A DNA stretch of 63,393 bases, filler included, from Syncephalis fuscata S228 (GCA_025786725.1; 5 parts of 5 records of this genome joined end to end with filler, not necessarily neighbours in it); one strand, 5' to 3'. Positions 5,813 through 54,483 are shown, counted from the first letter of the whole stretch. Made by a program: numbers and translations. Notes: a model not told the origin generated them from the letters alone.

Positions 5813-6116
5813 GAATTTGAATTTATTAGCTTAAGTGAGACAACGGTCCGTAGGACCTAACCGCGCATTTGCAGCATTTGTCTGCCACCCCTAGGAGAAT
5901 AGACGGTTCATTTCGAACCTATCCGCGCGCAACGCAGAACCTGCCATCTACAACTGAAACCGTTGGTGGCTCTCCTCACGTGTTGGAATATCGACCATTT
6001 CTTCTACGGAAGGATCCCATCACGCATTTCCTGAAAACAAGATTCGAACTAGGCGAACCAACATTTTCCTACTTTAGGGAAGACGCGTTGACCGTTTAGG
6101 CCACCACGCCTCCCCC
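5813..6116 (-). mobile_element. tRNA-derived SINE (~304 bp) with a 20-bp target-site duplication
   Basis: AAATAAGAAATGCTACATTT is repeated at 5793-5812 and 6117-6136. The minus-strand head has an A box TGGCCTAAACGG (6092-6103) and a B box GTTCGAATC (~6041-6049). The 3' tail is AAATTCAAATTCAAA. The body is GC-rich in an AT-rich context. Confidence 0.85.
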
Positions 6117-8550: not shown

Positions 8551-8688
8551 AAGGAGTACATAACAACGTTAAATGCCACACACAATATGCTATGTGATTA
8601 ACATAGTTTATTTAACTTAATAAACGTATAATAAGGTCCACAAGCTCATAACAATTAATAAAAAATAAACAAAATAATATAGAAAGTA

Positions 8689-12085: not shown

Positions 12086-12789
12086 TGTAGATTTGCAGAA
12101 TAGAGCAAAAGATAAGCGAGAAATAGAAAGCAGAGAGAGAGAAAGAGTAGAAAGTAAATAAGCAGGAGCGTAAAACGTATACTACTTGGTTTGACAGCAG
12201 CGGTTCTGTCCAGATTAAATACTCATCTAGATGGATCGCGAGGTGTAAGACCTGATGACGCCATCGATGGAACATGGTTCATTTTTCTCCGCCAATAGCA
12301 TCATCAGATAAAAGAGATGTAATTGCCGAAGATACCGTCATATCGGCATTAGACAATGAAAATTGCTGAAAAAAATATCTTTTTTTAACTATTGACCACT
12401 ATAAACGTATTGACCAGTCATTGTGTGACAGGTGGTATGCTGGTGTAATTTAAAAAAGATTGGCGGCATAGGTGGATGCTGAGTTCCATGCCGAGGTCAT
12501 CATTACTAATACAGGTCCTAAACACGACTGACTGAGCAATAAAGCGGCGCATTTCGGCCCGATATTCTTGGCACAAATCCTCTTGCGGGTTGGATAGAAA
12601 TAATCAATTCTAAATAGCATTAATGGCTCGCAGATAACAGATGCTTATTCTATTTGCTTCAAAGTGGCTAAAGTATGAAATAAAGTAGACAGTCAAAGAA
12701 GTAGATGTATTAATGATAAATTAGGTATGTATGTATATATGTATATGTTTAAGTGAGCCGATCTAAAATCCACAAAGAATATAGCTAGT

Positions 12790-13040
12790 AACACAAATGC
12801 AGCTTTTATCAATAAAGCATGGCTAATAAAACATAGAATATCATAAAATAAAAGCTAGTTAGTATATGATCGAATGGTATATGCGTAGTACCTGTATGCA
12901 TACTAAATACTAAATCTATGATGACGAGTATTTTAATGGCTAATGCCATCCACCACACAGTTTCATGCTCAATAGATTGGATGTTGTTAAATTTAGCCAT
13001 TTATCTTTCAAATCATACTAGATCATTAGCAAATTGTTTA
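12790..13040. mobile_element. Dispersed MITE-like family 1 fragment
   Basis: AAATCTATGATGACGAGTATTT..CATGCTCAATAGATTGGATGTTG..AAATCATACTA matches the family arm. Confidence 0.55.
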
Positions 13041-31589: not shown

Positions 31590-34071
31590 AATCCAACAAA
31601 AATCGACCAAATATACGGCTAAAAAAGTTAACTAAAAGTTAACTAAAGTTAAGTAAAAAGTTAAGTAATATTTGACTAAAATGTAAGGGTATCCCTTGCT
31701 ATTTTGTTAATAAATATAGACTAAAAGTTAATTAAAAGTTAAGTAATTTAGTTAATTAACTAATGGTAATGATAACCGTTTAACAACTTAGTTAACTTGT
31801 TAATTACTTAACTAATTACTTAACTTTAGTTAACTTTTAGTCTATATTTATTAACAAAATAGCAAGGATACCCTTACATTTCTAGTCAAATATTACTTAA
31901 CTTTTACTTAACTTTAGTTAACTTTTAGTTAACTTTTTTAGCCGTATATTTGGTCGATTTTTGTTGGATTTTTGTTGGATTTTTTGGGAAAAACGGCCCA
32001 ACTCCCCGTATTTTTAATTCCACGGATACTTGACCTAAAAATACACGGTGCCACTTGTTCGAACCGCAAGAAGCAGGCGCGTCGATCCTAATATGCTAAA
32101 AAATCGCCAAAAATCGTGGGAATGCGTGAAAAATACGCGGAGTTGGACCTCCATACAAAAAACGGCACTTTTTGCATGTTTTGATTTTTAATTCATTGGA
32201 TAAATTTTTGGCGATTTTTTCAATATATAGATCGACGCACATATTATTGCGGTCGAACGAGTGGTCCTGTGTATTTTTAGAGCAATATCCGTAGAATTAA
32301 AAATACGGGAGTTTGATGACTAGTTTATAGGGGATATTTCACGAATCTGAAATATCCCCTATAACAGCAACTAAACTTCGCGTATTTTTAACTCTACGGA
32401 TACTTGCTCTAAAAATACACAGGACCACTCGTTCGGACCGCAATGATATGATGCGTCGATCTATATATTCAAAAAATCGCCAAAAATTTATCCAACGAAT
32501 TAAAAATCAAAACATGCAAAAAGTGCCGTTTTTGTATGGAGGTCCAACTCCGCGTATTTTTCACGCATTCCCACGATTTTTGGCGATTTTTTAGCATATC
32601 AGGATCGACGCGCCTGCTTCTTGCGGTTCGAACAAGTGGCACCGTGTATTTTTAGGTCAAGTATCCGTGGAATTAAAAATACGGGGAGTTGGGCCGTTTT
32701 TCCCAAAAAATCCAACAAAAATCCAACAAAAATCGACCAAATATACGGCTAAAAAAGTTAATAAAAGTTAACTAAAGTTAAGTAAAAAGTTAAGTAATAT
32801 TTGACTAGAAATGTAAGGGTATCCTTGCATTTTGTTAATAAAAATAGACAAAGTTAACTAAAAGTTAAGTAATTAGTTAAGTAATTAACAAGTTAACTAA
32901 GTTGTTAAACGGTTATCATTACCATTAGTTAATTAACTAACTAATTACTTAACTTTTAATTAACTTTTAGTCTATATTTATTAACAAAATAGCAAGGGAT
33001 ACCCTTACATTTCTAGTCAAATATTACTTAACTTTTTACTTAACTTTAGTTAACTTTTAGTTAACTTTTTTAGCCGTATATTTGGTCGATTTTTGTTGGA
33101 TTTTTGTCGGATTTTTTGGGAAAAACGGCCCAACTCCCCGTATTTTTAATTCCACGGATACTTGTCCTAAAAATACACGGTGCCACTTGTTCGAACCGCA
33201 AGAAGCAGGCGCGTCGATCCTATATGCTAAAAAATCGCCAAAAATCGTGGGAATGCGTGAAAAATACGCGGAGTTGGACCTCCATACAAAAACGGCACTT
33301 TTTGCATGTTTTGATTTTTAATTCATTGGATAAATTTTTGGCGATTTTTTCAATATATAGATCGACGCACATATTATTGCGGTCGAACGAGTGGTCCTGT
33401 GTATTTTTAGAGCAAGTATCCGTAGAGTTAAAAATACGTGAAGTTTGATGACTAGTTTATAGTGGCATATTTCACGAAATCCTAAGATATCCCCTATAAC
33501 CAGCAAACTAGAACTTCCGTATTTTTAATTCTACGGATATTGCTCTAAAAATACACAGGACCACTCGTTCGACCGCAATAATATGTGCGTCGATCTATAT
33601 ATTGAAAAAATCGCCAAAAATTTATCCAATGAATTAAAAATCAAAACATGCAAAAAGTGCCGTTTTTTGTATGGAGGTCCAACTCCGCGTATTTTTCACG
33701 CATTCCCACGATTTTTGGCGATTTTTAGCATATCAGGATCGACGCGCCTGCTTCTTGCGGTTCGAACAAGTGGCACCGTGTATTTTTAGGACAAGTATCC
33801 GTGGAATTAAAAATACGGGGAGTTGGGCCGTTTTTCCCAAAAAAATCCGACAAAAATCCAACAAAAATCGACCAAATATACGGCTAAAAAAGTTAATAAA
33901 AGTTAACTAAAGTTAAGTAAAAAGTTAAGTAATATTTGACTAGAAATGTAAGGGTATCCCTTGCTATTTTGTTAATAAAATATAGACTAAAAGTAATTAA
34001 AAGTTAAGTAATTAGTTAAGTAATTAACAAGTTAACTAAGTTGTTAAACGGTTATCATTACATTAGTTAAT
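31590..34071. repeat. Palindromic satellite, left array: ~565-bp arms alternating head-to-head and tail-to-tail
   Basis: AATCGACCAAATATACGGCT occurs at 31601, 32731 and 33866 (period 1130-1135) with reverse-complement copies between them. Symmetry axes lie near 31780, 32345, 32905, 33478 and 34045. Confidence 0.95.
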
Positions 34072-34200
34072 TGCGGCTATTTAAAAATTTTAAATAGCGC
34101 TTTATTGTCGGGACAAAACAACTATAAAGGAAGCCGAGGAATCCAATTCATCGGATTCCACTACTTTTCTCCTTTATTTTAAGTTGCTTCGTCCCTCCAC
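34072..34200 (+). repeat. Terminal direct repeat A1
   Basis: Identical by eye to 38199-38327. Contains the palindrome GCTATTTAAAA-A-TTTTAAATAGC and the hairpin GGAATCC..GGATTCC. Confidence 0.95.
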
Positions 34201-34292
34201 AAAGCACTCAAAATAAAGCGTTCATATTTGATTAAGCAAAGTCAAAGGTTTTTATTCTTGTTATTTACAAATAAGATATACTATCTTTAAAC

Positions 34293-35321
34293 ATGTCTGA
34301 AGATCAGAGCCAGAGTGGTTCAGAGGAACCTGAGTCATCAGTGGTACGCCTGCACGAGGAGGATTTGGCTGCCATTGTTACCCAGCTTGCCCAAGCCATG
34401 AAGATCGGATCGAACCGCCCCGTTGAAGACCATGATCAGACTGACACGCCTGGTCATCTGTTGGAAGAGCCGAGGGCAGGTGCAAATCAACTGGTCGAAG
34501 CATCCGGCCATAACGCCACTGCTCGGCAGGACGTGAATCGCATGCGACATATCATCGCCACCAAACGACTTGGTACGGGTCGTTCGACGCAAAACGACGG
34601 GGACCCTAGGGAACCAGACGAGGAATCGGAAGGAGAGGATCCGCGGGTCCGGGTGGCGCGAACGGATGTTGAATACACGGATTTGCCGGAAGAGTTGGAT
34701 CCCAATTCACCTGATTTCGTGGAGTTATTGCTTAGAGGAACCCGTTTTAACGAATCGCCTTCTGAATTTGCCCAAACGGAAGATTTATTCATGCCGTTCG
34801 TGGGTTTTATTCCCATCGTTAATTACATGGATCCTAAACCACAAAATCTCAACACTATTCAAGACGACGTCTTCAACAAGCTTACCGGTGAAGGGCAAAG
34901 GGAAGGACGTGCTGTGTTATCCATGGTGCTTTACCTGGTAAAGACTATCCAAGCCTTGTCATTGTGGAATGTGGACATGCGTGAGGGTACATCCGCGTAT
35001 ACGGTGTTAGCCTGCGTGTTGCAAGTATTGGAACGGACTATATTAACTCGTTATTCAATGGTCCGGGCCAGGTCTGAATTGAGTGATGAGGCCATCCGCC
35101 AGGTGGAATCGCGTATGGATACGGTTGGCATGACCCGATACACCAGCAACATCCAATCCGAGATTTTGCGGGCCAAACGGAAGACAGAGACAGCGCAAAC
35201 TTTCAAAAGTTTAAGTCATTCCACCACCAAGCTTGGTAAAGGCACGACGGCCACCGACCCCAAGAAATCCGCCCCGCCACAGCGCGGTGGTGGTCCGGCG
35301 GGCGGGGCCGGAAATGCCTGA
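34293..35321 (+). CDS. ORF1, gag-like protein of the YR retrotransposon
   Basis: 342-aa intronless ORF directly upstream of pol. Called by position; helical C-terminal half and basic Gly-rich tail. Confidence 0.75.
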   Translation: MSEDQSQSGSEEPESSVVRLHEEDLAAIVTQLAQAMKIGSNRPVEDHDQTDTPGHLLEEPRAGANQLVEASGHNATARQDVNRMRHIIATKRLGTGRSTQNDGDPREPDEESEGEDPRVRVARTDVEYTDLPEELDPNSPDFVELLLRGTRFNESPSEFAQTEDLFMPFVGFIPIVNYMDPKPQNLNTIQDDVFNKLTGEGQREGRAVLSMVLYLVKTIQALSLWNVDMREGTSAYTVLACVLQVLERTILTRYSMVRARSELSDEAIRQVESRMDTVGMTRYTSNIQSEILRAKRKTETAQTFKSLSHSTTKLGKGTTATDPKKSAPPQRGGGPAGGAGNA

Positions 35322-37230
35322 ATCCTACCGGCCACCTCCGGTCGATCAGCCCCTGCATTTACGTGTAAGATCGGCCTGGAAAAGGTGGCATTCTATAGGG
35401 GCAAGTCGAAGAGTGATGAAGTGGATCCGGCATGGCGTAGCGGTACCATGGGGCGCGCAAGGGCCTCCTGCTCCGTTCCGCTATCGATCCTACCAGACCC
35501 GCGATCCTGCGGAGGTCCTGTTCTTACAGCAGGAAGTTCATCGATTATTGCAGGCCGGTGCCATAATCGAAATCCCGGCCAGCCAAGCCATTCACGTGTC
35601 GCCGTCGTTTATCATCCCTCGCAAGCCGCAGGGATACCGCCTAATAATCGACCTGCGACATCTAAACCAACACTGTTCAGAATCGCCGATGCGTTACGAA
35701 GACTTAAGAGTGCTCAAGTACTTGGCTCAACCGGAAGACCGCGCCATAGCCTTCGATCTGAAGGATGGTTATCTGGCGGTGGGCCTACGTCCCAATCAGC
35801 AAAAGTATTTTCAAACGGAAATACTAGGTCGGTATTACCAGTACCAATCCCTCCCGTTCGGGTGGAGTCTGTCCCCGTATTTCTTCGTCAAGACAATGCG
35901 GCCCATGGTGCAATATTTGCGCGAGCAAGGATTGCGTTGTCTGGCGTACCTAGACGACTTTCTGATTCTGCTCAATCACGTGCAAATGGCTCAGGAATGG
36001 CCGCTCAAGACGCAATTGCTGTTAAGAAGTTTAGGATTACAGCCACATCCGACGAAATGTGTGTGGGAGCCGACTCAGCTTACCTTGCTAGGAGTTTTAA
36101 AGATGTGCGCGAAGAAAGCCAGGATGGTGGTGGCGCGGGAGGTGGCGCAAGTGACGGGGGTGGTGATCGCGGCGAGGCATGCAATCCCGTATATAATGTT
36201 GCACCTAAGAGCATTATACAACGATCTGAAAAAGAGAGGGGATTGGCAAGCCCGGATCAAGGTCAGCAATGCAAGCGTCAGAGAGATGAGGCGAATTTTG
36301 AAAATCGTGAGCAATCAGCCTGCCGCGTCGATCATTCAGCGTCCGCCCGACTACGTTATTACTACGGATGCATCAGACGAGGGATGGGGGGCAACAATCG
36401 TGGACGGGCAAGGAGAAGAGAGATTGGCTTACGGACAGTGGGGGGCGGAAGAGAAAGAGTTGCACATAGTGCACAGAGAGGCGTTGGGATTGCTATACGC
36501 AGTAAAAAACTTCCAGACGATCATTCGTCAATCGGTGGTGCAGGCCATGATGGACGCCCAAGCTTCTCTCGGCGCGCTCAATGCTTTCGCCTCGTCCAGC
36601 GCTTCTTTGCACGCGATCGTTCGTCGGGTTTGGAATCTCTGTCAGCAAGAAGAAATACATTTGATGGGGCTAATCAAGTACTTACCCGGTCGATACAACG
36701 TGGCGGCGGATTTCCTGTCGCGAATCGTCCAAAAGTCCGATTGGCAACTACCGGCACCTATGTTCCAAGAGATAGAAGAAGCATTCGGCCCTCATACCAT
36801 AGATCGTTTCGCGGCGGGCTGGAACGCATTGCTACCGCGTTACAATTCACTCAACGCAGACGATGGGTGCGAGGGGGTAGATGCCCTGTCGGTTACGTGG
36901 CGGGGAGAAAACAATTTTATCAATCCCCCTTTCGGCCTTATGGGCGTAATCTTAACCAAGTTAATACGAGATCGCGCGCAAGCTACCGTCATCTTGCCTC
37001 GTTGGACCAGCCAGCCGTGGTGGCCTCTCGTGCAGTTGATAACAACCGCCGTGTTGCCAGTAGATTCCGTTCGGGTTTGGGCGAATGTAATGACAAGGTC
37101 GGACGTCATTCCAGAACCGGCGATCAATCCGAGTTGGAAGATCTTGGTGGCGCGCATGGACGGAGCTCGTATTTGCGCACGCAGCTATCACGCGCCTGGG
37201 CGGAGCAACTACAGTTGCCCGTCAATTTAG
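35314..37230 (+). CDS. ORF2: reverse transcriptase, RNase H and DNA N6-adenine methyltransferase domain
   Basis: RT motifs YRLIIDLR, DLKDGY, LPFGWSLSP and YLDD. RNase H motifs TTDAS..GWG, HIVHREA and YLPGRYNVAADFLSR. MT motifs IDRFA..N..LPRYNS, GVDAL...W, INPPF and PRWTSQPWWP. The ATG at 35314 overlaps the ORF1 stop. Confidence 0.95.
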   Translation: MPESYRPPPVDQPLHLRVRSAWKRWHSIGASRRVMKWIRHGVAVPWGAQGPPAPFRYRSYQTRDPAEVLFLQQEVHRLLQAGAIIEIPASQAIHVSPSFIIPRKPQGYRLIIDLRHLNQHCSESPMRYEDLRVLKYLAQPEDRAIAFDLKDGYLAVGLRPNQQKYFQTEILGRYYQYQSLPFGWSLSPYFFVKTMRPMVQYLREQGLRCLAYLDDFLILLNHVQMAQEWPLKTQLLLRSLGLQPHPTKCVWEPTQLTLLGVLKMCAKKARMVVAREVAQVTGVVIAARHAIPYIMLHLRALYNDLKKRGDWQARIKVSNASVREMRRILKIVSNQPAASIIQRPPDYVITTDASDEGWGATIVDGQGEERLAYGQWGAEEKELHIVHREALGLLYAVKNFQTIIRQSVVQAMMDAQASLGALNAFASSSASLHAIVRRVWNLCQQEEIHLMGLIKYLPGRYNVAADFLSRIVQKSDWQLPAPMFQEIEEAFGPHTIDRFAAGWNALLPRYNSLNADDGCEGVDALSVTWRGENNFINPPFGLMGVILTKLIRDRAQATVILPRWTSQPWWPLVQLITTAVLPVDSVRVWANVMTRSDVIPEPAINPSWKILVARMDGARICARSYHAPGRSNYSCPSI

Positions 37231-38198
37231 ATCCAGAACAACAACAGCGTTTGTTCCAATTACTCGACAAACAATATACGGAAGCGTCGTGGAATACTTA
37301 TAGCTCCCACGTTTCCAGTTACGCGCGTTTCTGTCGTGAGTATGGGCAACACCCTTTTCCACTAAAAATTGGTGCGATGGCCGTTTATATGGCCGCATCC
37401 AGTTTACGCGCGTTGGCACCTGCAACTATACAAGCACGGATGTCGGCGTTACGATCAATTAATAATCACCTCGGCTTCCCTGAAGTTGAATCAACACTAC
37501 TCACACAATTATCCAAAGGGTACGCAGCTTGGACTTTTGCTGAAAATCCAACCGTATCAAAAAGTAATTCATTTTTTCCTTCCTCCTGGTTGGCTCCTTA
37601 CGTATCGAATGATGGCTTGTTGACCGACGAGGTGGCATTACGCGACTTAAACATCATTCTGATAGGCGTGTTATGCGGCCTGCGTGCCTCTTCTCTACTC
37701 AAGATAGAAAAGACCGATTTACAAGTAACGAATACAATGCTTACCATCACAATTAACGGCGCGAAACGACATAAGCATGAGGCAGGACGTATTCTTGCAA
37801 TCGATTTAACACGCACAATAGTTGGACCACTCATCAGACGTTATTTGGAATCAACACAATTTATTAGTAGTAATACAGAAACAATATGGAGCCCGCCTTT
37901 TACTGAAAAGGCTATATTTCAGAGCCATTATACCGTCACGCAAGTATTACAACGGGTAATGAAGACTGCGGGTGCCCCAGCAGCGGTGGTTAAGACATTA
38001 ACATCGCATAGCGTACGACGCACGTTTGCGTCCGCCACCCACAGCATTGGTATCAGCAGCGCGAAGATAATGTATCAAGGCATATGGTCGAGTTTGACGT
38101 CAATGCAAAGGTACATACGAATGGAGTATGTAGCCCAACCTTTCGACTTTGCCCTGTTTGATTTCATGCAACAGTCTACTCCAGACATAAGGCAATAA
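35448..38198 (+). CDS. ORF3: tyrosine recombinase, with a long N-terminal part overlapping pol in another frame
   Basis: SAM-like region WNTYSSHVSSYARFC..LAPATIQARMSALRS and a full catalytic set GLRASS, K (GAKRHK), SHSVRR, QGIW, MQRY. First in-frame ATG at 35448; the true start may be later. Confidence 0.92.
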   Translation: MGRARASCSVPLSILPDPRSCGGPVLTAGSSSIIAGRCHNRNPGQPSHSRVAVVYHPSQAAGIPPNNRPATSKPTLFRIADALRRLKSAQVLGSTGRPRHSLRSEGWLSGGGPTSQSAKVFSNGNTRSVLPVPIPPVRVESVPVFLRQDNAAHGAIFARARIALSGVPRRLSDSAQSRANGSGMAAQDAIAVKKFRITATSDEMCVGADSAYLARSFKDVREESQDGGGAGGGASDGGGDRGEACNPVYNVAPKSIIQRSEKERGLASPDQGQQCKRQRDEANFENREQSACRVDHSASARLRYYYGCIRRGMGGNNRGRARRREIGLRTVGGGRERVAHSAQRGVGIAIRSKKLPDDHSSIGGAGHDGRPSFSRRAQCFRLVQRFFARDRSSGLESLSARRNTFDGANQVLTRSIQRGGGFPVANRPKVRLATTGTYVPRDRRSIRPSYHRSFRGGLERIATALQFTQRRRWVRGGRCPVGYVAGRKQFYQSPFRPYGRNLNQVNTRSRASYRHLASLDQPAVVASRAVDNNRRVASRFRSGLGECNDKVGRHSRTGDQSELEDLGGAHGRSSYLRTQLSRAWAEQLQLPVNLDPEQQQRLFQLLDKQYTEASWNTYSSHVSSYARFCREYGQHPFPLKIGAMAVYMAASSLRALAPATIQARMSALRSINNHLGFPEVESTLLTQLSKGYAAWTFAENPTVSKSNSFFPSSWLAPYVSNDGLLTDEVALRDLNIILIGVLCGLRASSLLKIEKTDLQVTNTMLTITINGAKRHKHEAGRILAIDLTRTIVGPLIRRYLESTQFISSNTETIWSPPFTEKAIFQSHYTVTQVLQRVMKTAGAPAAVVKTLTSHSVRRTFASATHSIGISSAKIMYQGIWSSLTSMQRYIRMEYVAQPFDFALFDFMQQSTPDIRQ

Positions 38199-38327
38199 TG
38201 CGGCTATTTAAAAATTTTAAATAGCGCTTTATTGTCGGGACAAAACAACTATAAAGGAAGCCGAGGAATCCAATTCATCGGATTCCACTACTTTTCTCCT
38301 TTATTTTAAGTTGCTTCGTCCCTCCAC
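38199..38327 (+). repeat. Direct repeat A2
   Basis: Starts immediately after the YR stop codon and matches 34072-34200. Confidence 0.95.
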
Positions 38328-38496
38328 CCACCCAGCCACTGACCCTGGTGCCTGTTGTTTGGAACGTTCTGAAACTTTTCTCCTTTATTTCTACCTTTCT
38401 TTCCTCTTTGGCCCTAGTAGCCTAATATCCATTTAAGTGCAATTAGTAACATCACCTACATTTCGAGAATAAAAGTTTTGTCAACAGGCAATAATG

Positions 38497-40680
38497 TAAA
38501 AGATATTTTTGCCATTTTTAACAATAAAATATAAACCAAAAGTTAACTAAAAGTTAAGTAATAATTAACTGGAAATGTAAGGGTATCCTTTGCCATTTTT
38601 GATAATAAATATAGACTTAAAGTTAACTAAAGTTAAGTAATTGGTTAGTTAATTAACTAATGATAATGATAACCGTTTAACAACTTGGTTAACTAACTAA
38701 TTATTAACTAATTACTTAACTTTTAGTTAACTTTTAGTCTATATTTTATTAACAAAATGGCAAGGATACCCTTATATTTTTAGTTAAATGTTACTTAACT
38801 TTTTACTTAACTTTAGTTAACTTTTAGTTAACTTTTTTGGTCGTATATTTGGTCGATTTTTGTTGGATTTTTGTCGGATTTTTTTGGGAAAAACGGCCCA
38901 ACTCCCCGTATTTTTAATTCCACGGATACTTGTCCTAAAAATACACGGTGCCACTTGTTCGAACCGCAAGAAGCAGGCGCGTCGATCCTGATATGCTAAA
39001 AATTCGCCAAAAATCGTGGGAATGCGTGAAAAATACGCGGAGCTGGACCTCCATACAAAAAACGGCACTTTTTGCATGTTTTGATTTTTAATTCATTGGA
39101 TAAATTTTTGGCGATTTTTTCAAATATCAGGATCGACGCATCATATTATTGCGGTCCGAACGAGTGGTCCTGTGTATTTTTAGAGCAATTATCCGTAGAA
39201 TTAAAAATACGCGAAGTTCTAGCTTGCTGGTTATAGGGGATATCCTTAGGATTTCGTGAAATATGCCCCTATAAACTAGTCATCAAACTTCACGTATTTT
39301 TAACTCTACGGATAATTGCTCTAAAAATACACAAGACCACTCGTTCTGACCGCAATGATATAGTGCGTCGATCTATATATTCGAAAAAATCACCAAAAAT
39401 TTATCCAATAAATTAAAAATCAAAACATGCAAAAAGTGCCGTTTTTTGTATGGAGGTCCAACTCCGCGTATTTTTCATGCATTCCCACGATTTTTGGCAA
39501 ATTTTTAGCATATCAGAATCGACGCGCCTGCTTCTTGCGGTCCGAACAAGTGGCACCGTGTATTTTTAGGACAAGTATCCGTGGAATTAAAAATACGGGG
39601 AGTTGGGCTGTTTTTCCCATAAAATCCGACAAAAATCCAACAAAAATCGACCAAATATACGACTAAAAGAAGGTAATTAAAAGTTAACTAAAGTTAAGTA
39701 AAAAGTTAAGTAATATTTGACTAGAAACGTAAGGGTATCCTTGCCATTTTGTTAATAAAATATAGACTAAAAGTTAATTAAAAGTTAAGTAATTGGTTAG
39801 TTAATTAATGTAATAACGTAACTTAGTTAATTGTTATGTTAGTTAATTAACTAATGGTAATGTAACCGTTTAACACTTAGTTAACTTGTTAATGATTAGT
39901 TATTAACTAATGGTAATGGTAACGTTAACTTAACTTTTAATTATTGACTTTAGTTAACTTTAGTTATATTTATTAACAAAATGGCAAGGATACCCTTACA
40001 TTTCTAGTCAATTATTACTTAACTTTTTACTTAACTTTAGTTAACTTTTAATTAACTTTTTTAGCCGTATATTTGGTCGATTTTTGTTGGATTTTTGTCG
40101 GATTTTTTGGGAAAAACGACCCAACTCCCCGTATTTTTAATTCCACGGATACTTGACCTAAAAATACACGGTGCCACTTGTTCGGACCGCAAGAAGCAGG
40201 CGCGTCGATTCTGATATGCTAAAAAATTGCCAAAAATCGTGGGAATGCGTGAAAAATACGCGGAGTTGGACCTCCATACAAAAAACGGCACTTTTTGCAT
40301 GTTTTGATTTTTAATTCGTTGGATAAATTTTTGGCGATTTTTTTGAATATTAGATCGATGCATCATGTCATTGCAGTTTAAACAAGTGGTTTGTGTATTT
40401 TTAGAGCAAGTATTTGTGGAATTAAAAATACGGGGAGTTGGGCCGTTTTTAAAAAAACAAAATCCAACAAAAATTGACCAAATATATGGCTTATAAAAGT
40501 TAACTAAAAGTTAAGTAATATTTAACTAGAAATGTAAGGGTATTCCTTGCTATTTTGACAATAAATATAGACTAAAAATTAATTAAGAAGCTAATTAAAA
40601 AGTTAATAATTAGTTAATGTAAAAAATCCCCTTGCCATTTTAATAATAAAATATAGACTAAGAAGCTAAGTAAAAATGTA
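38497..40680. repeat. Palindromic satellite, right array, decaying towards 40.7 kb
   Basis: Same unit as the left array, with axes near 38675, 39250 and 39860. Loop orientations mirror those of the adjacent left array. Confidence 0.93.
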
Positions 40681-42302
40681 TCAATTAGTTAATAACAATA
40701 ATACAGCTAATAGTAACTAATAATTAATTAATAAAGCGTTTTTAGTTCTATCTGAAAAGTCAGCTGCTAAAAATCTGCTCTGTAGATTGGACAAATAAAA
40801 TAAGTTAATTAGTTAATAATAATTGCTGTTTATAGTTGATTAATTAACTAATAATGTTATGTTTAATAGTTAGTTTATTGGTTATTTATTAATGAGTAAT
40901 ACGGCTCATTTGTTTATATTGATTAAATAATGTCGCAATATTATGGTTAGTGTATCAGTGCCATTAGTGGTATATGATTGTGTATTGCAGCATTGATGCT
41001 AGACAATGCACAAATCATTAGCAGTATATATGCTGGACACATCCAATGATGATGGCGCTGCTAGCTATTGCATGGTCATAGCAATTGTATTAATTGTTAA
41101 CATTGTGTGGGCACTTGCATATTCATCAGTAATTGTAGATTAGTGTATACTATACCTAAAGTTTAGGATATATAAACTACACAATTGTATAGTACTAACT
41201 GCTATGGCTGGACCAGAGTAGAACAATAAAAGCAAATGAATGTTTGGCAAAATAATGGTTTCTATTTAATGTGATAATTGTTTTTGTATTTATAGCAATG
41301 TTGGATATAGAGAAAAGGAGAAAAGAAACCAATTAGTAAGTATTTGTAAAGCTGTGATAGACTTTTGTAAAGTGTTTATTGATATCATAAATATGATAAT
41401 TGCTGTATATATAACACAGCTAATCACACTTAACAATGGACTGACTTATTGCCTGGCATTAGCAAAATACCATATTAATGATGTACCATTTATTTGCTAA
41501 TTAACATGACACTAATATTGGATTTTTGGTAACAGTATACACCAGTATATACTAGCTATTGATGCATCGATTGTTATACAATCAATAAACATATGCATTA
41601 TTGTAAGCAATTAATGTATAAGTCAGTGTCTGCTGTTAGATAGTTGTTATCAACAGTATCGGCAACTGAAGACAAAGTTGGTTCATTAGACATAGTGCAG
41701 ATGTGTACTAACTATGTTTATACAATTTGCATGTCTTGCCAGCTGTAGTCAACAGTGGTACATGCATGCACATCAATAACTATCTAACATACTACATTGC
41801 TAACCACATTGGCTTAGTAATCACTACTAGCGTTGTTGTCAATATTACAATATAAACGCCATATCAGACAGCTGATATTTATATACATACGCATCTAGTG
41901 ATACATAGCAACAACAACACTAGCATTCATCAGTAATAAATACGAGTATAAAACTGCTGCCTAGTATGCTTACAGTATTATCGGTAACAGCCAGCCTACA
42001 TTACTAGTGGCTAATGCTAATACGCTAATAAGTTGTACATACTGGCTGCTGTATTAGCAAACAATATAGTCAAGCAATATGCAATTGTTGCGATATATGT
42101 TAATGCACATGTAGCACCATCAATTGATACTATTTCTATAACTATTCATTGCAATCAAATACATGCTAATAGTTATGTATATCAATAGTGTCAATATTGT
42201 AATGTCTAATCATATGCTACTAATCAATGTTAATAGACCAGCCATGGCATTAACAAAACTAGCTAGGCAACATGAAAAATTAATAAGTGCTAACAAAAAT
42301 CT

Positions 42303-42851
42303 AATTGACTGTTTATTAGATAACTGACTAATTAATGCAGTTTTTGATTAGTATTTGTGTGTTTTTATTACCAAAATGACAAAAAAGATTATTGCTGCTT
42401 TTTTGATTGATTAAGCAATTTTCGCTAATTTTTAATTCCATCAATAATATAGCTATAAATACACAATAACATTTATTACAATTGCATAATCTTGGGGCGC
42501 TGATACATATAAATTATGTATTTTTGAAAAATCACGGAAAGATGTTACAAGCAGAAGCAACAATATTGTCCCAAAAAATGATATTTTCAAGCACTTTTTA
42601 GCTGTTAGTACTTTTGCATAATTTTTTAAAATACATCATTTATATGTATCGATGCCCTAAAACTATGCGGCCATAATAAATGGCATTACACACTTTTAGC
42701 TAAATTAATGATGGAATTAAAAATTGGTGAAAATTGCTTGATCAATCAAAAAGGCTGTAACAGTCCCCTTTGCCATTTTGACAATATAAGCCTACACAAA
42801 TACTAACCAAAAAGTATGTTAATTAATCAGCTATTTAATGCATAGTCAATT
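42303..42851. mobile_element. Degenerate fold-back/MITE-like element with ~240-bp inverted arms, distantly related to the satellite unit
   Basis: TTTTTGATTGATTAAGCAATTTTCGCTAATTTTTAATTCCATCA (~42400) is the near reverse complement of TGATGGAATTAAAAATTGGTGAAAATTGCTTGATCAATCAAAAA (~42709). TTAGTATTTGTGT pairs with ACACAAATACTAA. Confidence 0.75.
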
Positions 42852-45828
42852 GTTAATTGTTAACGTTAATTTATATAGTAATGACTGGCCATTAGAAACT
42901 GTTGTCGTTTTTGCTAGCCATAATAACTAATTAGCAGTACCGTTAATATATTATTAATTAAAAAAGATCAGTAATTAATGTTACATGTAGTTGCAATGTA
43001 TATGCAATACTAAAATATCACATTGCTAAATCATCAAGCAATGCCCTAGTCTGGCGTTGTCCTATAGTTTTAGTTTTTGATACTTGCTGATAATTAACAC
43101 TTATATTACTGCTTCTTAATTGTTTACTATCAAATAGGCTATTAAGCTATTTTATAATAAGTGAAATAATTATATACTGTTATATGATAAGGCCTGATGA
43201 ATGCACGTTTTGTCTTATTTATAGGTTATACAATCTTGATAGGCTTACGTCTTGTTGTACATGTAACAAATTTGCTATTTCACAATAAAATTTACAACTT
43301 TGGCATGCCTAGCGGCAATCTAATTACTAACGCTAAGTACGGTATCTAATGACTATAATATAGCTTAATGGACACTTCTTTATTTTTGTTATTCTATTTA
43401 ATAGTATTAAGTATGGTGCAGGACAAAATATTATAAGTAAACACAAACTGTAAATAATAAAAGTAATTGTTATCGCGTTTTAGCTAGGTTTTATTTTCAT
43501 TTGTTACGTAGCAAGTGTCTACATCTTTGTGATTTACAAATATCTATTTATAATTAGTAACCAATAACAATGACACTTACTGTTCAATGTCGACCGTGTC
43601 GCTTTATCCTTTATTCGTTCTTTTCTGTTTTTCGGCACTTTTGTTTGTCGCAGCCTTATTATTAACTAGTATATATGCCTAGTTCATCCACTACATGGCT
43701 TTATTGCTAAAGATAAATATTGTTATGCTTAACAACATTAACGTACAAGCATGTAATGTTCAGTAAACACAACTATCTTCGATCTTGTAGCTCATATTTA
43801 ATAGTAATACATGCAGTCGAAATAAGCAATAACATAACATCTACACACCATTTCCAACTGTAATATATAGTATATATTATTTATGAATAAGCAACAATTT
43901 ATTCAGCCATTGCGCTACTTAAATGCCGGTTTTATTATTATAGAGACATTATGCCGTCTAATTCATTCAAAAGTAATGCAGATGATAAACGTTCTATTTA
44001 GTTATTAAAAACTGAAAACCATTATTGTGCTAATGTTATTGTACTGCTATGCTGGCCATAATACTTTTCATAGTATTTTTGTAGATGTAGCTGATTGCCG
44101 TAGTGGCATATACATTTGTGAAAAGTTATGTTTATTATTTTATTTGGTTAATACTTGCTAACCATTGGATAAAATAAAGCATGAGCATGGCTGAAACAAC
44201 TTAATAAAATATAATTAAACGAGCTATATATTTGCTGCAAGCTTTTGCAGTTTAATAGATATAGCTGAGCTATGACTTCTTCCTGGAATAATAAAGTTAT
44301 TGACTAAAGAGGCGAATAATGCAAATCATTGATTAGGATTTGATGTTTGTATAAGCTAAATAGTAGCTGTCAAACATAGATAAGCCACTTTACATGGCTA
44401 CCTATACAGCAAAGAATATATTATACTAACAATATGCAGCACGTTAATTTGTTTGCATAGTATATTGATATGCTGTAATTCTTATACACGCAATCACAAT
44501 ACCAACAGTGGCCAATAAACTTTAATATAGCCTATAGTCACTCATACATTTATAATCACTATCAAATGTATCTTCTATATAATTATATTAAAAATTAGCT
44601 GGTCACAATATCTGACATTTTTGTACCGTCTAAATACATGGCACATCATTAATTATAAGTCGGCTACAAAATTTATGCTTAGTATTGCTTGCATAAAATA
44701 ATTATCTAATGCACACCGTTACATTTACAATATTACCGTAGAGTTTTATTTTAAATATAGTAAGTTTTACTGTAAGTTATCTACTATGGCAATAAAGTAT
44801 AGTATTTTACGACTAAATCGTACACAGTCGATAGCTTATCCAGTACTGTTTAAAATCAACGGTGGTTATGTATATATAACAGCTATAGTAGCATTATTAT
44901 TACTGTTTTTTAATATCAAGCACCTACACTATTGCAATCTGATAGCTTACCATTTCAGTATTACTACAATCGATACTATTACTGGTTAATTGTTGAGTTT
45001 TACTTTGAATATTACATTTGGAGTCTCCAAAGCAAACTTTGTTTTAATTGGAGTTATGCTATTGCTATACGCAACATAGTTATATTGCTTCCTATTAAAA
45101 TATTGCTAATAAATTGATTTAAATGATGTAACATACTATTTGATTTCTTTGAAACATTTGAGGCTGATCATTGTTGTTGTTGACCGTGTGTAGAAAGCTT
45201 GATCGCGTATTAATAGAAGCCATATGATTGTGATTCCATATCATTTTTCATGTGTTGTTATTGTATCCATGTACAGCATGGTTTCTTGCATTTGAATGGT
45301 TTGTTCTATTTTCTATTCTTCTACTATTACATTTGGGCATATTTGTGATGCAAGATCAATACTAATATAATTGTTATAAAAGTCGTTTATTAAACAGCCA
45401 CCTTTCCTATAGCCAATCTGACTAAATAAATGACATTTTGAACAATTAATATCATAATGACAATATATATATATATTAAAGCAATAATAAAATAACTAAT
45501 TAATTACATTATTGTACTGATAATTACACATGGATCAATTAATGTTGGATGTAATATTATATATGTTATAGTAATAAATAAGTGTTTAATTGTGTTTAAA
45601 AGTATTAAGAAAAGATGGTGAAATGAGTCAATAAAAGATATGAAAGTGCAATAGTTCTGATTAGTTAAACAAAGGCTTCTGTGTGTAAATCATAATGAAT
45701 TAAATGACAGTTTTCAACTTGGCAGTTTATCACCACTAACGTAAAGTGGGTCGTCATCATTTTAGATCTACGCTTTTCTCTATTTTCTATTTTCGTTGAC
45801 GCGACACACTGACCACGATTTATCCATC

Positions 45829-46961
45829 ATGTCGAATGCGGCAGCTCAAACCGTTAACACGCTTATTAAGTATGCTCTTCCTATAACGCTGGGCTTTGCT
45901 TTTGTCCAGTCCTCCTTGTTTGATGGTAAGTGTCGGTGCGATTGAGAATGCAGCTCTACTGCTGCGTTTAAGCACATGAAACTCAGACTAGCCAATTCAC
46001 TGACATGCACACTCTGGTCTATTGTTATTTGCCACGATAGTACGGGGCGGATATAGAGCAGTAATCTTTGATCGTTTGAAGGGTGTCAAGCAACAATCAG
46101 TAGGAGAGGGCACGCATATTCTTATGCCATGGCTACAACGCGCGGTGTTATTTGATGTGCGCACTAAGCCACGTAGCATTTCAACGACCACGTCGTCCAA
46201 AGATATCCAGCAAGTGTCGCTAACACTACGTGTGCTACACCGACCTGACCAAAGCAAGCTATCAGTAATCTATCAAAACCTTGGCCAGGACTACGATGAA
46301 CGTGTTTTGCCCAGTATTGTAAATGAAGTGCTTAAAAGTATTGTGGCTCAATTCGATGCCGGTGAATTGATCACACAGCGTGAACTGGTACGAATGAAGC
46401 GTATAAATACTAATAGCAATACAATATTAATATTATTTTGATAACCACCCAGGTATCATCGCGTATTCGTGAGGATCTAGTACGTCGTTCTAGGGAGTTC
46501 CACATTGAATTGGAAGATGTCTCCATTGTAGGCTGCAGTTTTAGTTGAGCAGTGACTAAGTACTAATTCTATTGACCATGATAGACGCACATGACATTTG
46601 GCCGTGAATTTACCAGTGCTGTAGAGTCCAAGCAAATCGGTTGGTTAAAATAATTGTTTCTAGCCACATTAATACTAATATGTCATGACTATCAGCGCAA
46701 CAAGAGGCAGAGCGCGCCAAATTTGTTGTCGAGCGTGCTGAACAGGAGAAACTAGCCTCTATTATCCGCGCGGAAGGTGAAGCACATGCTGCCGAACAAA
46801 TTTCGGCTGCGTTGGCAAAGGCCGGTCCAGGTCTTATTGAGTTCCGACGCATCGAAGCATCCAAGGAGATTGCACAAGTGTTGGCAGCATCTCGTAATGT
46901 CACTTATCTGCCATCCGGTGCTAATAATGGCGCCAATATGCTATTCAACTTGGGAGTGTAA
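45829..46961 (+). CDS. PHB1: Prohibitin 1, multi-exon
   Basis: [96 protein letters not shown]. Confidence 0.95.
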
Positions 46962-47464: not shown

Positions 47465-50400
47465 ATGCTAGTTTCCAGATTATTCGGCGCTAGTCCCTTT
47501 GACGATCTTGTCGGTAAGTATTGGTTTGACAGCGTGCATTCTGTCTATTATGATGACCGCTTATAGCCAGTACTATTTGCTATGGCGAGTCTATCGGTTG
47601 TTGAATGCTCTATAGTAGCGCAGTATACCCCTTATATATACATACATACAAACATACATACATGCATATATATATATATATATATATGACTGTTGATTAT
47701 CAACTAATCACTTACAATTGCCACTATATGCATATCTATCTATTTCTATATAGACCGTGCTACTTCCGAGTATTTGCCAGCAGGTCAGGAGGATCTGATT
47801 TTAAGTCTAGATGTATGCGATTACATTCGAGGCAAGCAAGTCGAGCCACGAACGGCTATCCGCGCACTTAAGCGGCGTATTAGTCATCGCAATCCCAATG
47901 TTCAAATGCTAGGCTTAAAGGTAGCTAGGGAATATTACAGTCCAACTGGTTGCTAACTATGCTTAATATTTAATAATAACCATACTATAACGGATTACAG
48001 CTTACCGACACTTGTGTCAAGAATGGTGGACATCACTTTCTGGTCGAAGTGGCATCCAGAGATTTTATGGATTATCTTACCGAGTTGTTAAATCAGCCTG
48101 TAAGTTGACTGACATAATAGCCATTTTACGTAAATATATATCTGACCCGTTTAACACGATTACTTCAGTCCACCACAACCGAAGTACGTAATAAGATTCT
48201 TGCTTTGATTCAGAATTGGTCACATACTTTTCAGTCACGATCAGATTTGACATATGTCTGTGATGTTCATCGTGCACTTGTATCATCAGGTATTATCTTT
48301 TAATAAGAATTACGAATTTAATTAACTAGTTACTTATTTTATTCCATCTAGGACATATCTTTCCTAAACTAGAAAAGACGAATGCATCCATGATTGATAC
48401 TATGACAGTAAGTAATAGTAGTATATATACATATACATATATATATTGACTGTATCTAACCAACTGTATTAGCCTCCTGACTGGACAGATAGTGATGTAT
48501 GTGAACGATGCCGAACACAATTTACGTTTACCAACAGAAAGGTAAGTTAATAGCCGTACAATGTAATATACAATATCATACAAATACTTACCAATTAAAC
48601 CAATATATGTTCATATAGCATCACTGTAGAAATTGTGGTAAAACGTTCTGTCAGCCATGTTCATCGTATGAACTAGCACTTCCTCATATTGGTATTCACC
48701 AAGAAGTGCGAACATGCCATGGCTGTTATCATTCTATTAAAGGCATTAGATCCACTTCAGGCAATACCTCAAATACTGGCCATTTATTACTTGGATCTCA
48801 ATCTGCCTCTGGACCTTCTGGCACGACTGGAGAAGGCCACGACAGTGATGATGAGGATATGAAACGGGCCATTGAACTATCTCTTAAAGAATCACAAGCC
48901 CACCGACCTGTCGCACCACCACCTCGACAACAACAGCAACAACAACAACAACAACAACAAGTACATACCAAAGTAAGTATATTCATTGTAATATCTAATA
49001 GTACAGAGTAATAACCAAAAGTAGAAGAGTGACGAGGAAGAAGAGGATCCAGATCTAGCCGCGGCCATTGCTGCATCATTACAAGAAACACATATATCAC
49101 AAAGTAATGATACTCGTATCCGTACGTCTTCCCGACCACCAAGTCGATCCACCTCTACTCCTCAGGTAATAGATAGAGCATTACAATAATATAGCCTAGT
49201 CCATTAACATATTAGTGTATGATATAGTCAACACAGAAACGTGATCCCAATGATCTAACTGCTATAGATGCCGAGAATATTGTATTATTCTCAACACTTG
49301 TAGAACGACTCCAGGCAACTAATGGGTCAGTTATGGGAGATAGTCAAGTACAGGTATGTGGATATTAATATAGATTACAATAAATTAATAATCATCACCA
49401 TTATCATGGCTATTAGGCATTAAATCACCAAATAGGATCATTAAGACCAAAATTGATTAAAGGACTTGAAGAAAGCGCCAGAAAACATCGTAAGTTATTT
49501 ATTAGCAAGCCAATAACCATTTATACAGTTTATTAATCATCAATTAATAATATATTAGGTGCCTATCTTGAATTACACGAAAAGCTGACTGCTTCCCAAA
49601 AACAATATGATACAATGTTAAAAGAACAACAAATGGCCGCTTATCACGCACAACAACAACAACAACAACAGTTACGATTACAACAACAACAACAACAACA
49701 TTTAATACAGAATGGATGGGCAGTACCACAACCAATGCCTAATCCACCTTATGCCAATATCATTTATACACAGGCCCTACCTATAAATGATACACCATAT
49801 CCACCTACTTATGCCAATACCAATGCCAATTATCCTAATGGACAACCACCACAGTCGATGCACATACCACAACAACCACATCCACAACCTCAATTATCAC
49901 CAGCTGTATCAGCATCTTATGTAGCCACACCCATGCCATCACAACCACCTATTGGTTATCCTCAATCAACGGCATCAACATCCATTGTTCATACCAATCC
50001 AATCTATTCAATGGCTTCTAATCAACCTACCTACACTACAGCCAATACGGTGACTGATCATCAAATGAATGGATTAAATACACCTACACCTACTACTAAT
50101 AACAATAGTGGAGGTGGATATACATCTAATCCTGTCTATGTTAATCATCAAGCCACTTTATCTACAACACCTACACATCAAACAACAGCAACAGCAACAA
50201 CAGCAACAACAACAACAACAACAACCGCTGTACCCAATGCACCACCACAACCACCGATTAATACAGTCAATACAACCACACCCACCAGTGGATATACGAC
50301 CAATGAACATAGTAGTAATAGTCATCCTACTGGCCAATCAACAGCATCATTTACCGATCCTACATCAACAGGTGGCTATACAACAGCCAAGTAAGTTTAT

Positions 50401-50848
50401 CTAATAAACACCAATTAATTAACTAATATATCATTTATCTAGTTCATTGCCTACACTTCAATCTACCTATACTATGCCATCTGCCACTACCAACACTACC
50501 ACCACACCTGTGCCACAATCCATTCACTCGACCAATAACCATAATCAACCACCACAACAGTATACTACTATGGAATCAAATAAAGATGCAAGTCCCCATA
50601 GTAATACACGTACACAACATCAACATACACCTTCTAATCCATTTCATCAACAAGGATGGAAGGTAAATAATGGTGGTACTATTGATCAAGTATTGGCCAA
50701 TGCACCTACTGCACCCAATCTACCACCACTACCATCTGTGCCTCAACCAGCACCTATTGGCACACCCAATACATACAACTATCCACCACCACCACCACAA
50801 GAACAACAACAACAACATACAATTAGCCCATCACTTATTGAACTATAA
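47465..50848 (+). CDS. VPS27: ESCRT-0 subunit Vps27/Hrs (VHS, FYVE, two UIMs, Q/P-rich tail)
   Basis: [36 protein letters not shown]; [37 protein letters not shown]; UIMs [14 protein letters not shown] and [16 protein letters not shown]; C-terminal clathrin box LIEL. Confidence 0.93.
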
Positions 50849-51555: not shown

Positions 51556-54483
51556 TTATGCTAATAGGTGAGTGTAGATGCGCGAATCTTCATGAACGGC
51601 CATTTCTTTCGCTTTAAATTCGTTGAGTTCCATTTTAATCGCTTGGGCTAGTGCAGGGGTTAATCTAATAATAGATTCACCACGACGGTCATATTCAGTA
51701 GCTGGCCATGTCTCGCCTACAAGAACACGTTCATTAAATCGGAATCGCTTAGGTTCTTTGTCCACCACCACCACCACCATGGATTTAGAAGTAGTACTAT
51801 TGTTATTGTTATGTAATTGTGGTGGTGGTGGTTGACTACTAGTCTGAAGGGTCGTGGTCATATCACTACCACTACCACTACCACTAATATCTTCATCATT
51901 GTTACTAAGTGTAGATGAGGAGACCTTTAATGGTCCATCTGCTTCATTCACAGTGGATACGGCAGTAGATGAAGATGCCGGGGTTAGTAGTGCTTCACAG
52001 GAAGAAGAGGCCGATGATGAAGTAGAAACAGATGACTCGGCCTCTTCATTCGATAGTGTAGATGAAGATGAACCAGATTGAGATCGAGTAACATCCAATA
52101 CAGATAGTTCAGATGCTGATGATGTCACTTCATTACTACTACTATCATTCTTATAACTAGAATTTCTATTAGTCCATGGGGCAGGTGAAGATGGCATACG
52201 AGCCATTTCTGGACTAGTACCAATACCACTAGCTATAAACAAACCCCTAATTAATACTTATACTATGTGGATGTCTATTAATTACCTTTTAGAATACTAC
52301 GACTGGGCATGGGTCGGTCTTTTGTACTGCCGGTTGATATTAACGATGATTTGGAATCATTTTGATTATGTTCATGATGTGCAAATAGTAACTGATTACC
52401 TAATGGTTGCTCATCTTCATCGTCACTTTCCTCATCCTCCTCCTCTTCACTACCTTCTTCTGTTGAATATACATCATCGTCATCTTCATTTAATTGATTC
52501 ATTAGTGTGGTCTTTTCCGCTTCTTCTTCTTCTCCTTCAGAAATAGTCAATGTATTCATATTCTGACGATGAGTACTGTCATTAGATGTGCCATTGGATG
52601 GGGTTGACATGCCTTGTCCAGGTACCATTAATGAAGGGTTGCCAGTAGGACAGGTTCTTAGAATAGGCTCTGATAAGTTTCTCTGTCTATAGGCTTCCCA
52701 TTGTGCATTGTTATGGTTGTTATGGTTGTTGTTATTGGACTACTGGGAATGGTGGGTTATCGTGTATTAAAGGCAACATTAACATGGCCACCATTCACAT
52801 ATTATGAACGGAGTGCATTTGAGATGACATCACAGAATTAGAATACATATTATTTGACATACTATTTGCATTGGCGGGAGAGAAATACGGAGATGCTGGA
52901 CGGCCCATTTGAGGCATCCACGAATGACGTTGCATCATTTGATTTGCATTCATTACCGGTGCAGGTTGTGGATGGAATGGTGACTGTGGTGACTGTTGTT
53001 GGCCATTGAATGGTAAAGATGCACCAAACATGTGTTGTGGTGGAGGTGTTACCATTATTGAGGTGAACATAAAGGTCTAACTACTACTACTACTGCTAGA
53101 TGGATGTATAGTGGTGGGTGTTGTCATCGTCATCATCATTTGCAGTATTGGCAGTAGTAACGGTTGTAGTGCCACTAAATGACTTTGCTCTTGAATGAGA
53201 AGCGGATGATGATGATCCAAGTGGTGAAGGGGCCACTGGACGTCGATAACACCATTATTGCCATTGCCATTGCCGTGGAATGAGGCAGATCTAGATTCAC
53301 GTGTCATATTGGCTATATTGCCACTGGTATAATGGTTATTGTTATGGTTATAGTGGGCTATATTGGCCGGTGCGGAGGCTAATGAACTAGATGACCCATT
53401 TTCACCACCGTACATCGCGTAAATGTTACCATTGGCCATACCAGGTGAATCGTGTCCACTACTACTACCACCACCATTATTATTGGTGTAGGTGCTGCGA
53501 CGTGAACGGTGAGTACCATTGCTACTAGCACTGCCACGTCTTTGTTGTTGTTGTTGATAGGATGCTACTGAATGTTGTCCAAGTGAACTCACCGATCCAG
53601 TAGACGATGTATGTATCATGCCATTGCCATGCCTGATCTATATTGAACTGAACAAATGGATGATGATGACGATGAGAATGAAGGACGGCCACCGTTAAAT
53701 GGTTGGTGATGACTGCCGCTGCTATTGGTGCCTTGATAAATAGTGGTACGTTCGTTGTTGCTGGAGCTGCCGGCACGACGACGTTGACTACTAGAACTGT
53801 GGCCATATTCTTTATTGCGTGTACTACCACTACCACCATTGCTGGTGTAGTTGGAGTGTTGAGAGGATGTAGATTTACGCGATGCCGATGCCGTATAATG
53901 ATCTACACCTTTGCCTTTAATATGATCGGGTGTATCGGGTCGTGATCCAGGTGCTGATGCAATAGCCTTTTTTACGATCACTTGATTTACCTTCTGAGTC
54001 ACTGCCACGGCTTTTATCAAACATATTTGATGCACTGAAGACACGTCGGAGACGCTGGGCAATGTTTGAACGTACACTTGAATTGCTACGAATACTCGCC
54101 GTGTCTGAATCCTTTAATCGTTGATTGACCGATGAAAGTTCTGGGGTAAATGTACCTGATGCCATTGTTGTATTCGTTGTAGTGGATGTGCCACTATTGG
54201 ATGCTGTATCCATGCCGGCGGTAGATTGAGCATGGCTGTTGGATGAAGCGTTGTTGTTTTGGTTGCGTTTAAATAAATCACCGGCCATAAATAAACTGCG
54301 TCGATTGCTGTTACGCCCTTGCGACGCCTGCGTTCGCATATTGGCGTTCAAATCCGTTAGAACAGCTGCGGTGGCTGCCGATGAGCTGGCTTGTGACTGT
54401 GGCTGGTGTTTTCCATTAGTGGCACTTTTGTTTCCTGCTTCTTCACGTCGATTCGATTGCTTCTTTCCACTGGAACGAGCCAT
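51556..54483 (-). CDS. BNI4/PHACTR-like protein phosphatase 1 targeting subunit, low complexity, with introns and/or frameshifts
   Basis: C-terminal KRFRFNERVLVGETWPATEYDRR..RLTPALAQAIKMELNEFKAKEMAVHEDSRIYTH, an RSILK motif upstream, and a chain of same-strand ORFs from 54483. Confidence 0.8.

Follow-up and report, generated by a model that had tools for sequence, protein, structure and literature searches.

A chain of long inverted repeats whose joining segments lie in both orientations, interrupted by a retrotransposon that encodes a tyrosine recombinase (YR), raises the question of whether it is a satellite, the integrated remains of a hairpin-ended replicon, or a substrate of the recombinase. 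Such a locus lies in the window considered here, a stretch of 63,393 nucleotides (filler included) made of parts of five records of the Syncephalis fuscata S228 assembly (GCA_025786725.1) joined end to end and not necessarily neighbours in the genome, and all three possibilities had been put forward for it in a first-pass annotation. The piece analysed covers 31590-56109 (24.5 kb; all coordinates are those of the window), is AT-rich (27-39% GC outside genes) and has its left edge within the repeat. The anatomy of the array was obtained by repeat finding and self-BLAST, the spacer orientations by pattern search and alignments, and the depth data from short-read contigs of four public runs of one sample, placed on 33400-39399.

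We consider it likely that the locus is a dyad-symmetric satellite in which spacers and sub-arrays have been inverted by recombination between inverted arms, and that the PAT-type retrotransposon of the DIRS order inside it is an incidental insertion. The locus is probably the edge of a high-copy block of this satellite in an AT-rich eukaryote, an early-diverging fungus.

A palindromic and probably high-copy unit

Arms of ~535 bp in alternating orientation (numbered from left to right in Table 1) extend from the edge of the piece at 31590 to ~40700 and are joined by two asymmetric spacers, A (~55-65 nt) and B (~55-70 nt). To the left of the inserted element the period measures 1129-1135 bp, to its right 1152-1223 bp, and the piece contains ~4.5 periods of a defined monomer repeated head to tail. 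The alternating arms, the orientation of every spacer and the scattered substitutions between copies that the first-pass annotation had described were all recovered. The palindromic architecture of the repeat is real and far beyond chance: one period (31778-32912) aligned to its own reverse complement with 95.7% identity over 1151 columns, and single inverted pairs reached 215 nt at 100% or 339 nt at 94%. As single-stranded DNA, 31857-32833 (977 nt) folds into one continuous hairpin of -546.7 kcal/mol, compared with -105.8 +/- 6.1 for shuffles (z = -72), and the full period gives a single hairpin with a 6-nt tip (-619.5 kcal/mol). The arm interior beside spacer A is made of 11-nt repeats and a unit of ~80 nt, followed further in by two sub-repeats of ~115 nt, which are 80-83% alike, mutually inverted and contain small hairpins. 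The array ends near 40700 in a truncated, rearranged arm.

The summed depth of the arms in the best-covered bins was ~2,200-13,800 across the four runs, while the inserted element had ~4-8 (14 in its repeated A segment), and bins containing a spacer still reached several hundred to several thousand. Arm k-mer depth was ~1000x that of the element over thousands of variant contigs, a ratio that is relative to the element in a stretch without a single-copy gene and is not an absolute copy number. The contigs average ~48 nt, and their coverage of the element is patchy. Between 1,600 and 5,100 were placed per run, about half of them at 99% likeness or more and about half at 95-99%. So many and such varied contigs agree with a chromosomal satellite of very numerous, diverged copies rather than with a small replicon of uniform sequence. 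In a 2019 run labelled as the same species, almost none of the sampled words of a 10-kb stretch were present, although the satellite is abundant in the 2017 sample; the run may come from another kind of library or another strain, or isolates may differ in the satellite.

Parvoviruses and poxviruses are hairpin-ended replicons with flip/flop termini and concatemer junctions, and fungi can carry small hairpin-ended linear plasmids. The array resembles the junctions of these viruses in having asymmetric turnarounds in both orientations between head-to-head duplex arms. It could accordingly be read as an integrated concatemer, or a chromosomal master copy, of a duplex hairpin-ended or dumbbell DNA of ~0.57 kb (a single-stranded circle of 1.13 kb), with spacers flipped by rolling-hairpin replication and with a depth excess that is partly extrachromosomal. 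The head-to-head and tail-to-tail arms with two kinds of turnaround, the folding of one period into a single hairpin with a 6-nt tip, and a ~1000-fold depth excess that is not partitioned between chromosomal and other DNA would all agree with this. However, the unit differs from the viral ones in having no replication gene: the open reading frames (ORFs) of the arms (up to 114 aa) matched no protein family, and no initiator or other coding capacity was found. The thousands of variant contigs and the 2-9% by which neighbouring copies diverge agree better with a chromosomal satellite than with a homogeneous replicon, the copies are varied and decayed, the edge decays gradually with a triplicated spacer A and a truncated end arm, and the array is chromosomal, beside ordinary genes. 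In addition, exact matches to two conserved arm patterns were absent from JGI metagenome contigs, as were exact matches to one of the two patterns from IMG/VR. The concatemer put forward in the first-pass annotation is thus very unlikely. We give even less credence to a variant of it in which the 1.13-kb unit is still a self-propagating, gene-less dumbbell DNA, whose extrachromosomal copies cause much of the depth excess and whose integrated concatemers are the arrays. The fold-back satellite that the annotation had listed last is the possibility borne out by the ~1000x depth, the thousands of variant contigs, the divergence rising toward the edge and the lack of a family match for the arm ORFs. 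Scans for tRNA and Rfam families returned no tRNA and no curated RNA family, the only notable Rfam match (MIR8007, on the spacer B hairpin) being far below threshold with 38 bits against a gathering score of 195.

The origin of the unit may be a separate matter. A fold-back transposon, i.e., a non-autonomous element with long inverted repeats, could have been amplified in tandem secondarily, spacer B then being its loop and spacer A the junction between copies. Fold-back elements have arm ends of short tandem repeats, and here tandem repeats of 11 nt make up the arm ends near spacer A; the spacer-A sites are also the most variable part of the array (triplication, extra 80-nt units), and an unrelated structure of ~550 bp resembling a miniature inverted-repeat transposable element (MITE) lies at 42303-42851. 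On the other hand, neither target duplications nor solitary dispersed copies were seen, and nothing outside the array in the 24.5-kb piece matched the satellite. We regard such a descent as improbable to a high degree; it concerns the origin only and is compatible with a satellite.

Inverted spacers and a proposed exchange between arms

Both spacers are found in both orientations, as flip and flop (Table 1). Brought to a common orientation, the spacer copies align through their core and their distinct inner flanks, which means that the whole asymmetric segment of ~55-70 nt, not a few bases, is truly inverted. For instance, the second spacer B (B2) and the reverse-complemented third one (B3) are nearly identical, flank variants included. 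The first copy (B1) differs from both at its centre, where the stem is 4 bp longer and the loop has 6 nt instead of an asymmetric ~17 nt, making it more palindromic; this suggests a template switch within the hairpin, resembling the templated mutations known as 'quasi-palindrome correction'. The inner-arm variants beside B1 are also swapped relative to B2, although both cores are in the plus orientation: over the last ~30 nt beside spacer B, arm1 matches arm4 and arm2 matches arm3. Two nested inversions that differed in their exchange points would leave flanks swapped in this way.

Differences number 11-22 per ~510 nt in the left arms and 23-48 in the right arms, and the neighbouring copies also carry private indels. 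The right arms, above all those at the edge, are the most diverged, with the truncated last arm (40327-40700) the most diverged of all, and this rise toward the edge is as expected at the edge of a satellite. A 215-nt stretch of arm1 is 100% complementary to arm4, and one of 128 nt is 100% identical to arm3 in direct orientation; variants that are mosaically common to arms in both orientations fit repeated exchange in both orientations.

The flanks of the element had been described as mirror images, which holds for the spacers in part and does not extend to the arms. With the exception of its first spacer, the left part is in the state B+ A- and the right part in the state A+ B-, i.e., the same array seen from the other strand, while the leftmost spacer A (+) breaks the pattern of its side and none of the right arms pairs with a particular left arm (arm6 shows 24, 27, 24 and 23 differences from arms 1, 2, 3 and 4, respectively). 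A recent inverted duplication of one flank around the element was excluded, as each right arm is about as distant from one left arm as from another. The simplest description consists of three sub-arrays (one unseen to the left of ~31790, one at 31790-34071, and one in opposite orientation at 38497-40700) with two orientation switches, the first seamless and located somewhere in arm1, the second at an irregular junction formed by 34037-34071 together with 38497-38660.

We infer that these patterns arose by exchange between arms. Each spacer is flanked by long, near-identical inverted repeats, which would serve as exchange substrates, and homologous exchange or template switching between them would invert whatever lies between the exchange points: a single spacer if the arms adjoin, a whole sub-array if they are distant. 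The breakpoints would be traceless because the arms are symmetric. The PAT-type element would have been inserted later by its tyrosine recombinase, with no target duplication, at a short TG/TAATG core. Inversions and arm-to-arm conversion have been documented for a human Y palindrome (PMC3723533), and among large primate X palindromes about half of the scorable cases have spacers oriented differently in different species (PMC8327919). If the inferred mechanism is right, the array would be like them in having its spacers flipped by arm exchange and its arms kept similar by conversion. The symmetry centre is also where rearrangements gather here (the reshaped B1, the triplicated spacer A), whereas the units are ~100x smaller than the primate palindromes, chained in tandem, non-coding and apparently present in very many copies.

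The inserted element and its junctions

Elements of the PAT type are classified by the presence of a methyltransferase and by direct, not inverted, repeats (PMC4157794, PMC3783388). The inserted element (Table 1) has, like them, a gag-like ORF, reverse transcriptase (RT), RNase H, Dam-like methyltransferase (MT) and YR in that order, with the YR ORF frameshifted and overlapping, direct terminal repeats and no target duplication. Judged by these sequence features, it belongs to the PAT type within the DIRS order, though its B repeat is unusually short and displaced. Its A repeats (129 nt) are direct and 100% identical, and its B repeat is only an 11-nt identity (38190-38200 / 38486-38496). Joining the element ends in a circle (38486-38496 to 34072 onward) recreates the internal junction at 38190-38210, in keeping with the principle of split direct repeats. 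It departs from the textbook arrangement A1...B1-A2-B2 in that the B repeat has only 9-11 nt and lies 158 nt from A2, and its gag has no zinc finger (ORF1 was without a CCHC or other Cys/His motif, unlike Pat1-like Gag). Inverted terminal repeats, which together with an internal complementary region would mark a Dirs1-like element, were absent in a self-comparison. The closest proteins found with the RT ORF were 31-34% identical; the whole 937-aa YR-frame ORF gave no match in a search whose words came from its overlapping, non-homologous first 500 residues, and an exact look-up of ORF1 and of one host ORF found neither on record in public assemblies. Reports of DIRS elements in fungi come only from early-branching lineages (PMC3783388), which fits the fungus-like prohibitin gene in the piece.

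Two further features of the element were observed. Its A repeat starts with a 13-bp inverted repeat (34072-34110), which at the internal B1-A2 junction (38193-38234) extends to a 43-nt palindrome with the inferred crossover point in its left arm; this palindrome may be a recombinase binding site or a priming hairpin. In addition, the YR frame is open for 635 codons across the entire RT/RNase H/MT ORF, where 2000 codon shuffles reached a maximum of 292 codons and 2000 synonymous shuffles one of 347. Arg, Gly, Ser and Ala abound in the overlapping part, for which no homologues were found, and the long overlap thus looks maintained, not accidental.

At the insertion site, the target is not duplicated: the left flank ends in TTAAT and the right flank begins with TAAAAG, and the element junction and the target have TG, possibly TAATG, in common. 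When the flanks are rejoined, the empty site resembles the natural junction of tandem 85-nt units at 40607-40625, so that the irregular junction, and with it the orientation switch, most likely predates the insertion. The element thus appears to be a later, simple insertion into an already irregular junction that did not create the mirror arrangement, and its link with the array appears incidental.

The alternative is that the recombinase prefers the satellite as its target or substrate; it would then cut or recombine at spacer-A-type sites and so cause the switch and perhaps other flips. In its favour, the insertion point lies 10 nt from a spacer A and within ~10 nt of the orientation switch, and there is the common TG or TAATG. 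In Dictyostelium, DIRS-1 has also been reported as enriched in centromeric heterochromatin (PMC7192593). Other copies exist as well, with flanks that are unseen: in three runs of the public sample, contigs with the element 3' end stop matching the window at 38495-38496, two of them continue for 122-133 unmatched letters, and there are variant 3' ends, with differences at 38419, 38421 and 38453 in one contig and at 38289 in a second one. There are therefore other copies or alleles of the element with a different right flank. Several findings speak against a role of the recombinase. Comparison of the element termini with the satellite gave only chance-level matches beyond a core of 2-5 nt. No recombinase site is needed for the flip at 31764 or for the swapped B1 flanks, which are 1.7-2.3 kb away from the element. 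With the satellite at ~1000x the depth of the element, nearly all spacers are far from any element copy, and the rejoined empty site is an ordinary-looking unit junction. Furthermore, the palindromic array was absent at two related elements, of which only one, a distant relative with 78-nt direct repeats (L001), has readable flanks, and these showed no nearby inverted repeats. The proposal of the first-pass annotation that the array serves the recombinase is hence quite unlikely. The other distant relative is carried by a metagenomic contig (L002:1-4407) whose two ends are the same 59 nt at a spacing of 4348 bp, which would agree with a split-direct-repeat element assembled in circular or tandem form.

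Several points weigh against an inverting satellite with an incidental insertion. The relative orientation of spacers ~565 bp apart comes from the assembly, the contigs being too short to link two spacers, and the eight visible spacers allow neither rates nor a preferred state to be estimated. The exact right junction of the element also comes from the assembly, and the contigs leave the path of the window there. The coincidence of the switch and the insertion point could exceed chance. Part of the depth may be extrachromosomal, the copy number being uncalibrated to a single-copy gene, and the public sample may be the source of the assembly itself. It could thus be argued that the arms are real while the assembly is wrong in the differing spacer orientations, and perhaps also in connecting the two flanks across the element: adjoining spacers are not linked by reads, the piece ends within the array, contigs diverge from the window at 38496, and one contig has an opposite-strand joint at 34026-34061, so that both orientations exist among near-identical flanks and could mislead an assembler. 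Yet differences of 2-9% between neighbours, with private indels, suffice to place accurate long reads, and spacers 565 bp apart fit within single reads of that kind. The flipped spacers carry co-inverted flank variants, which are not expected from consensus errors, and the element ends obey the circle-junction rule exactly at both array boundaries. Misassembly is for these reasons unlikely.

Table 1 Coordinates of the satellite array, the inserted element and the neighbouring genes
Feature	Position	Strand or orientation	Remarks
Left array part	31590-34071	.	runs off the piece edge
arm0 (partial)	31590-31763		
Spacer A core	31764-31789	+	
arm1	31790-32313		
Spacer B, copy 1 (B1)	32314-32365	+	
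arm2	32366-32897		
Spacer A	32898-32923	-	
arm3	32924-33445		
Spacer B, copy 2 (B2)	33446-33500	+	
arm4	33501-34036		
Spacer A	34037-34061	-	plus 10 nt of flank
Tyrosine-recombinase retrotransposon, DIRS order, PAT type (by sequence features)	34072-38496	+	4425 bp
A1 repeat	34072-34200		
gag-like ORF (ORF1)	34293-35321		342 aa
RT/RNase H/Dam-MT ORF	35233-37230	+	
YR frame, open	35385-38198	+	
RT domain	~35617-36096		Pfam RVT_1, 3.5e-17
RNase H domain	~36283-36564		Pfam RT_RNaseH, 1.4e-6
MT domain	~36733-37035		Pfam Dam, 2.7e-8
YR domain	~37632-38123		Pfam Phage_integrase, 7.7e-12
A2 repeat	38199-38327		
Unique 3' part of element	38328-38485		
Terminal 11-mer of element	38486-38496		identical to 38190-38200
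Irregular stretch	38497-38660	.	two diverged ~80 nt units (spacer-A-proximal arm part), leading into spacer A
Right array part	38661-40700	.	opposite orientation to left part
Spacer A	38661-38686	+	
arm6	38687-39228		
Spacer B, copy 3 (B3)	39229-39284	-	pattern position 39268
arm7	39285-39808		
Three tandem A motifs	39809-39937	+	including 39855
arm8	39938-40440		
Terminal arm	40327-40700		truncated, more diverged, tandem 85-nt units
Prohibitin-1 gene	45826-46958	+	four exons, short introns
Gene with ubiquitin-interaction motif	48706-50848	+	motif followed by long Gln/Thr/Pro-rich exons
Ser/Asn-rich gene	51556-54483	-	

Comparable satellites and neighbouring sequences

The closest counterparts are satellites of Tribolium with inverted subunits of 300-700 bp: the major satellite of T. 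brevicornis (1061 bp, two inverted segments of ~470 bp), TAUD2 of T. audax (inverted subrepeats of ~700 bp) and TmSat2/MAD2 of T. madens (inverted segments of ~300 bp) (PMC13081366; bioRxiv 10.1101/2024.12.02.626372), of which that of T. brevicornis has been called the most prominent reported (PMC13081366). The likeness is one of architecture, not of compared sequence, and consists in a tandem repeat, here apparently also of high copy number, whose kilobase-scale monomer is made of two long inverted segments; these could fold as a hairpin and contain nested smaller inverted repeats. The arms described here, with ~535 bp and ~95% complementarity (100% in stretches), are at least as long as those of T. 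brevicornis, or somewhat longer, and more perfect. Unlike in Tribolium, they are not separable into left and right types, individual spacers occur in either orientation, and the host looks fungal. Tribolium arrays also contain inverted sub-arrays joined at conserved inversion sites, i.e., macro-dyad symmetries (PMC13081366; bioRxiv 10.1101/2024.12.02.626372). Similarly, the left and right parts are opposite here and meet at a short irregular junction, although only ~2.5 periods are visible per side and a switch can also be seamless within a symmetric arm. By its architecture, the repeat is of the same kind as the inverted-subunit satellites of Tribolium, and the known recombination between mirror-image repeats would explain its design.

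No description of a fungal satellite of this kind turned up in our literature searches. If the assembly is right, the monomer is among the longest and most perfect palindromic satellite monomers seen, and it apparently occurs outside insects, probably in an early-diverging fungus. Its two asymmetric spacers are built-in orientation markers for inversions within a satellite, which could be counted with long reads, and the repeat raises questions about switches recurring at fixed junctions, cruciform formation and the marking of centromeres.

To the right of the array, the separate inverted repeat of ~550 bp at 42303-42851 has arms of ~230 nt with 76-81% complementarity around a 91-nt spacer; its sequence is not related to that of the satellite, and it may be a MITE or a fold-back element. 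Ordinary host genes begin 5 kb beyond the edge of the array (Table 1). When the exons were searched singly, a prohibitin exon was closer to PDB chain 9urz_B than to human PHB1, which we take to be a fungal sign on the assumption that this chain is akin to yeast Phb1.

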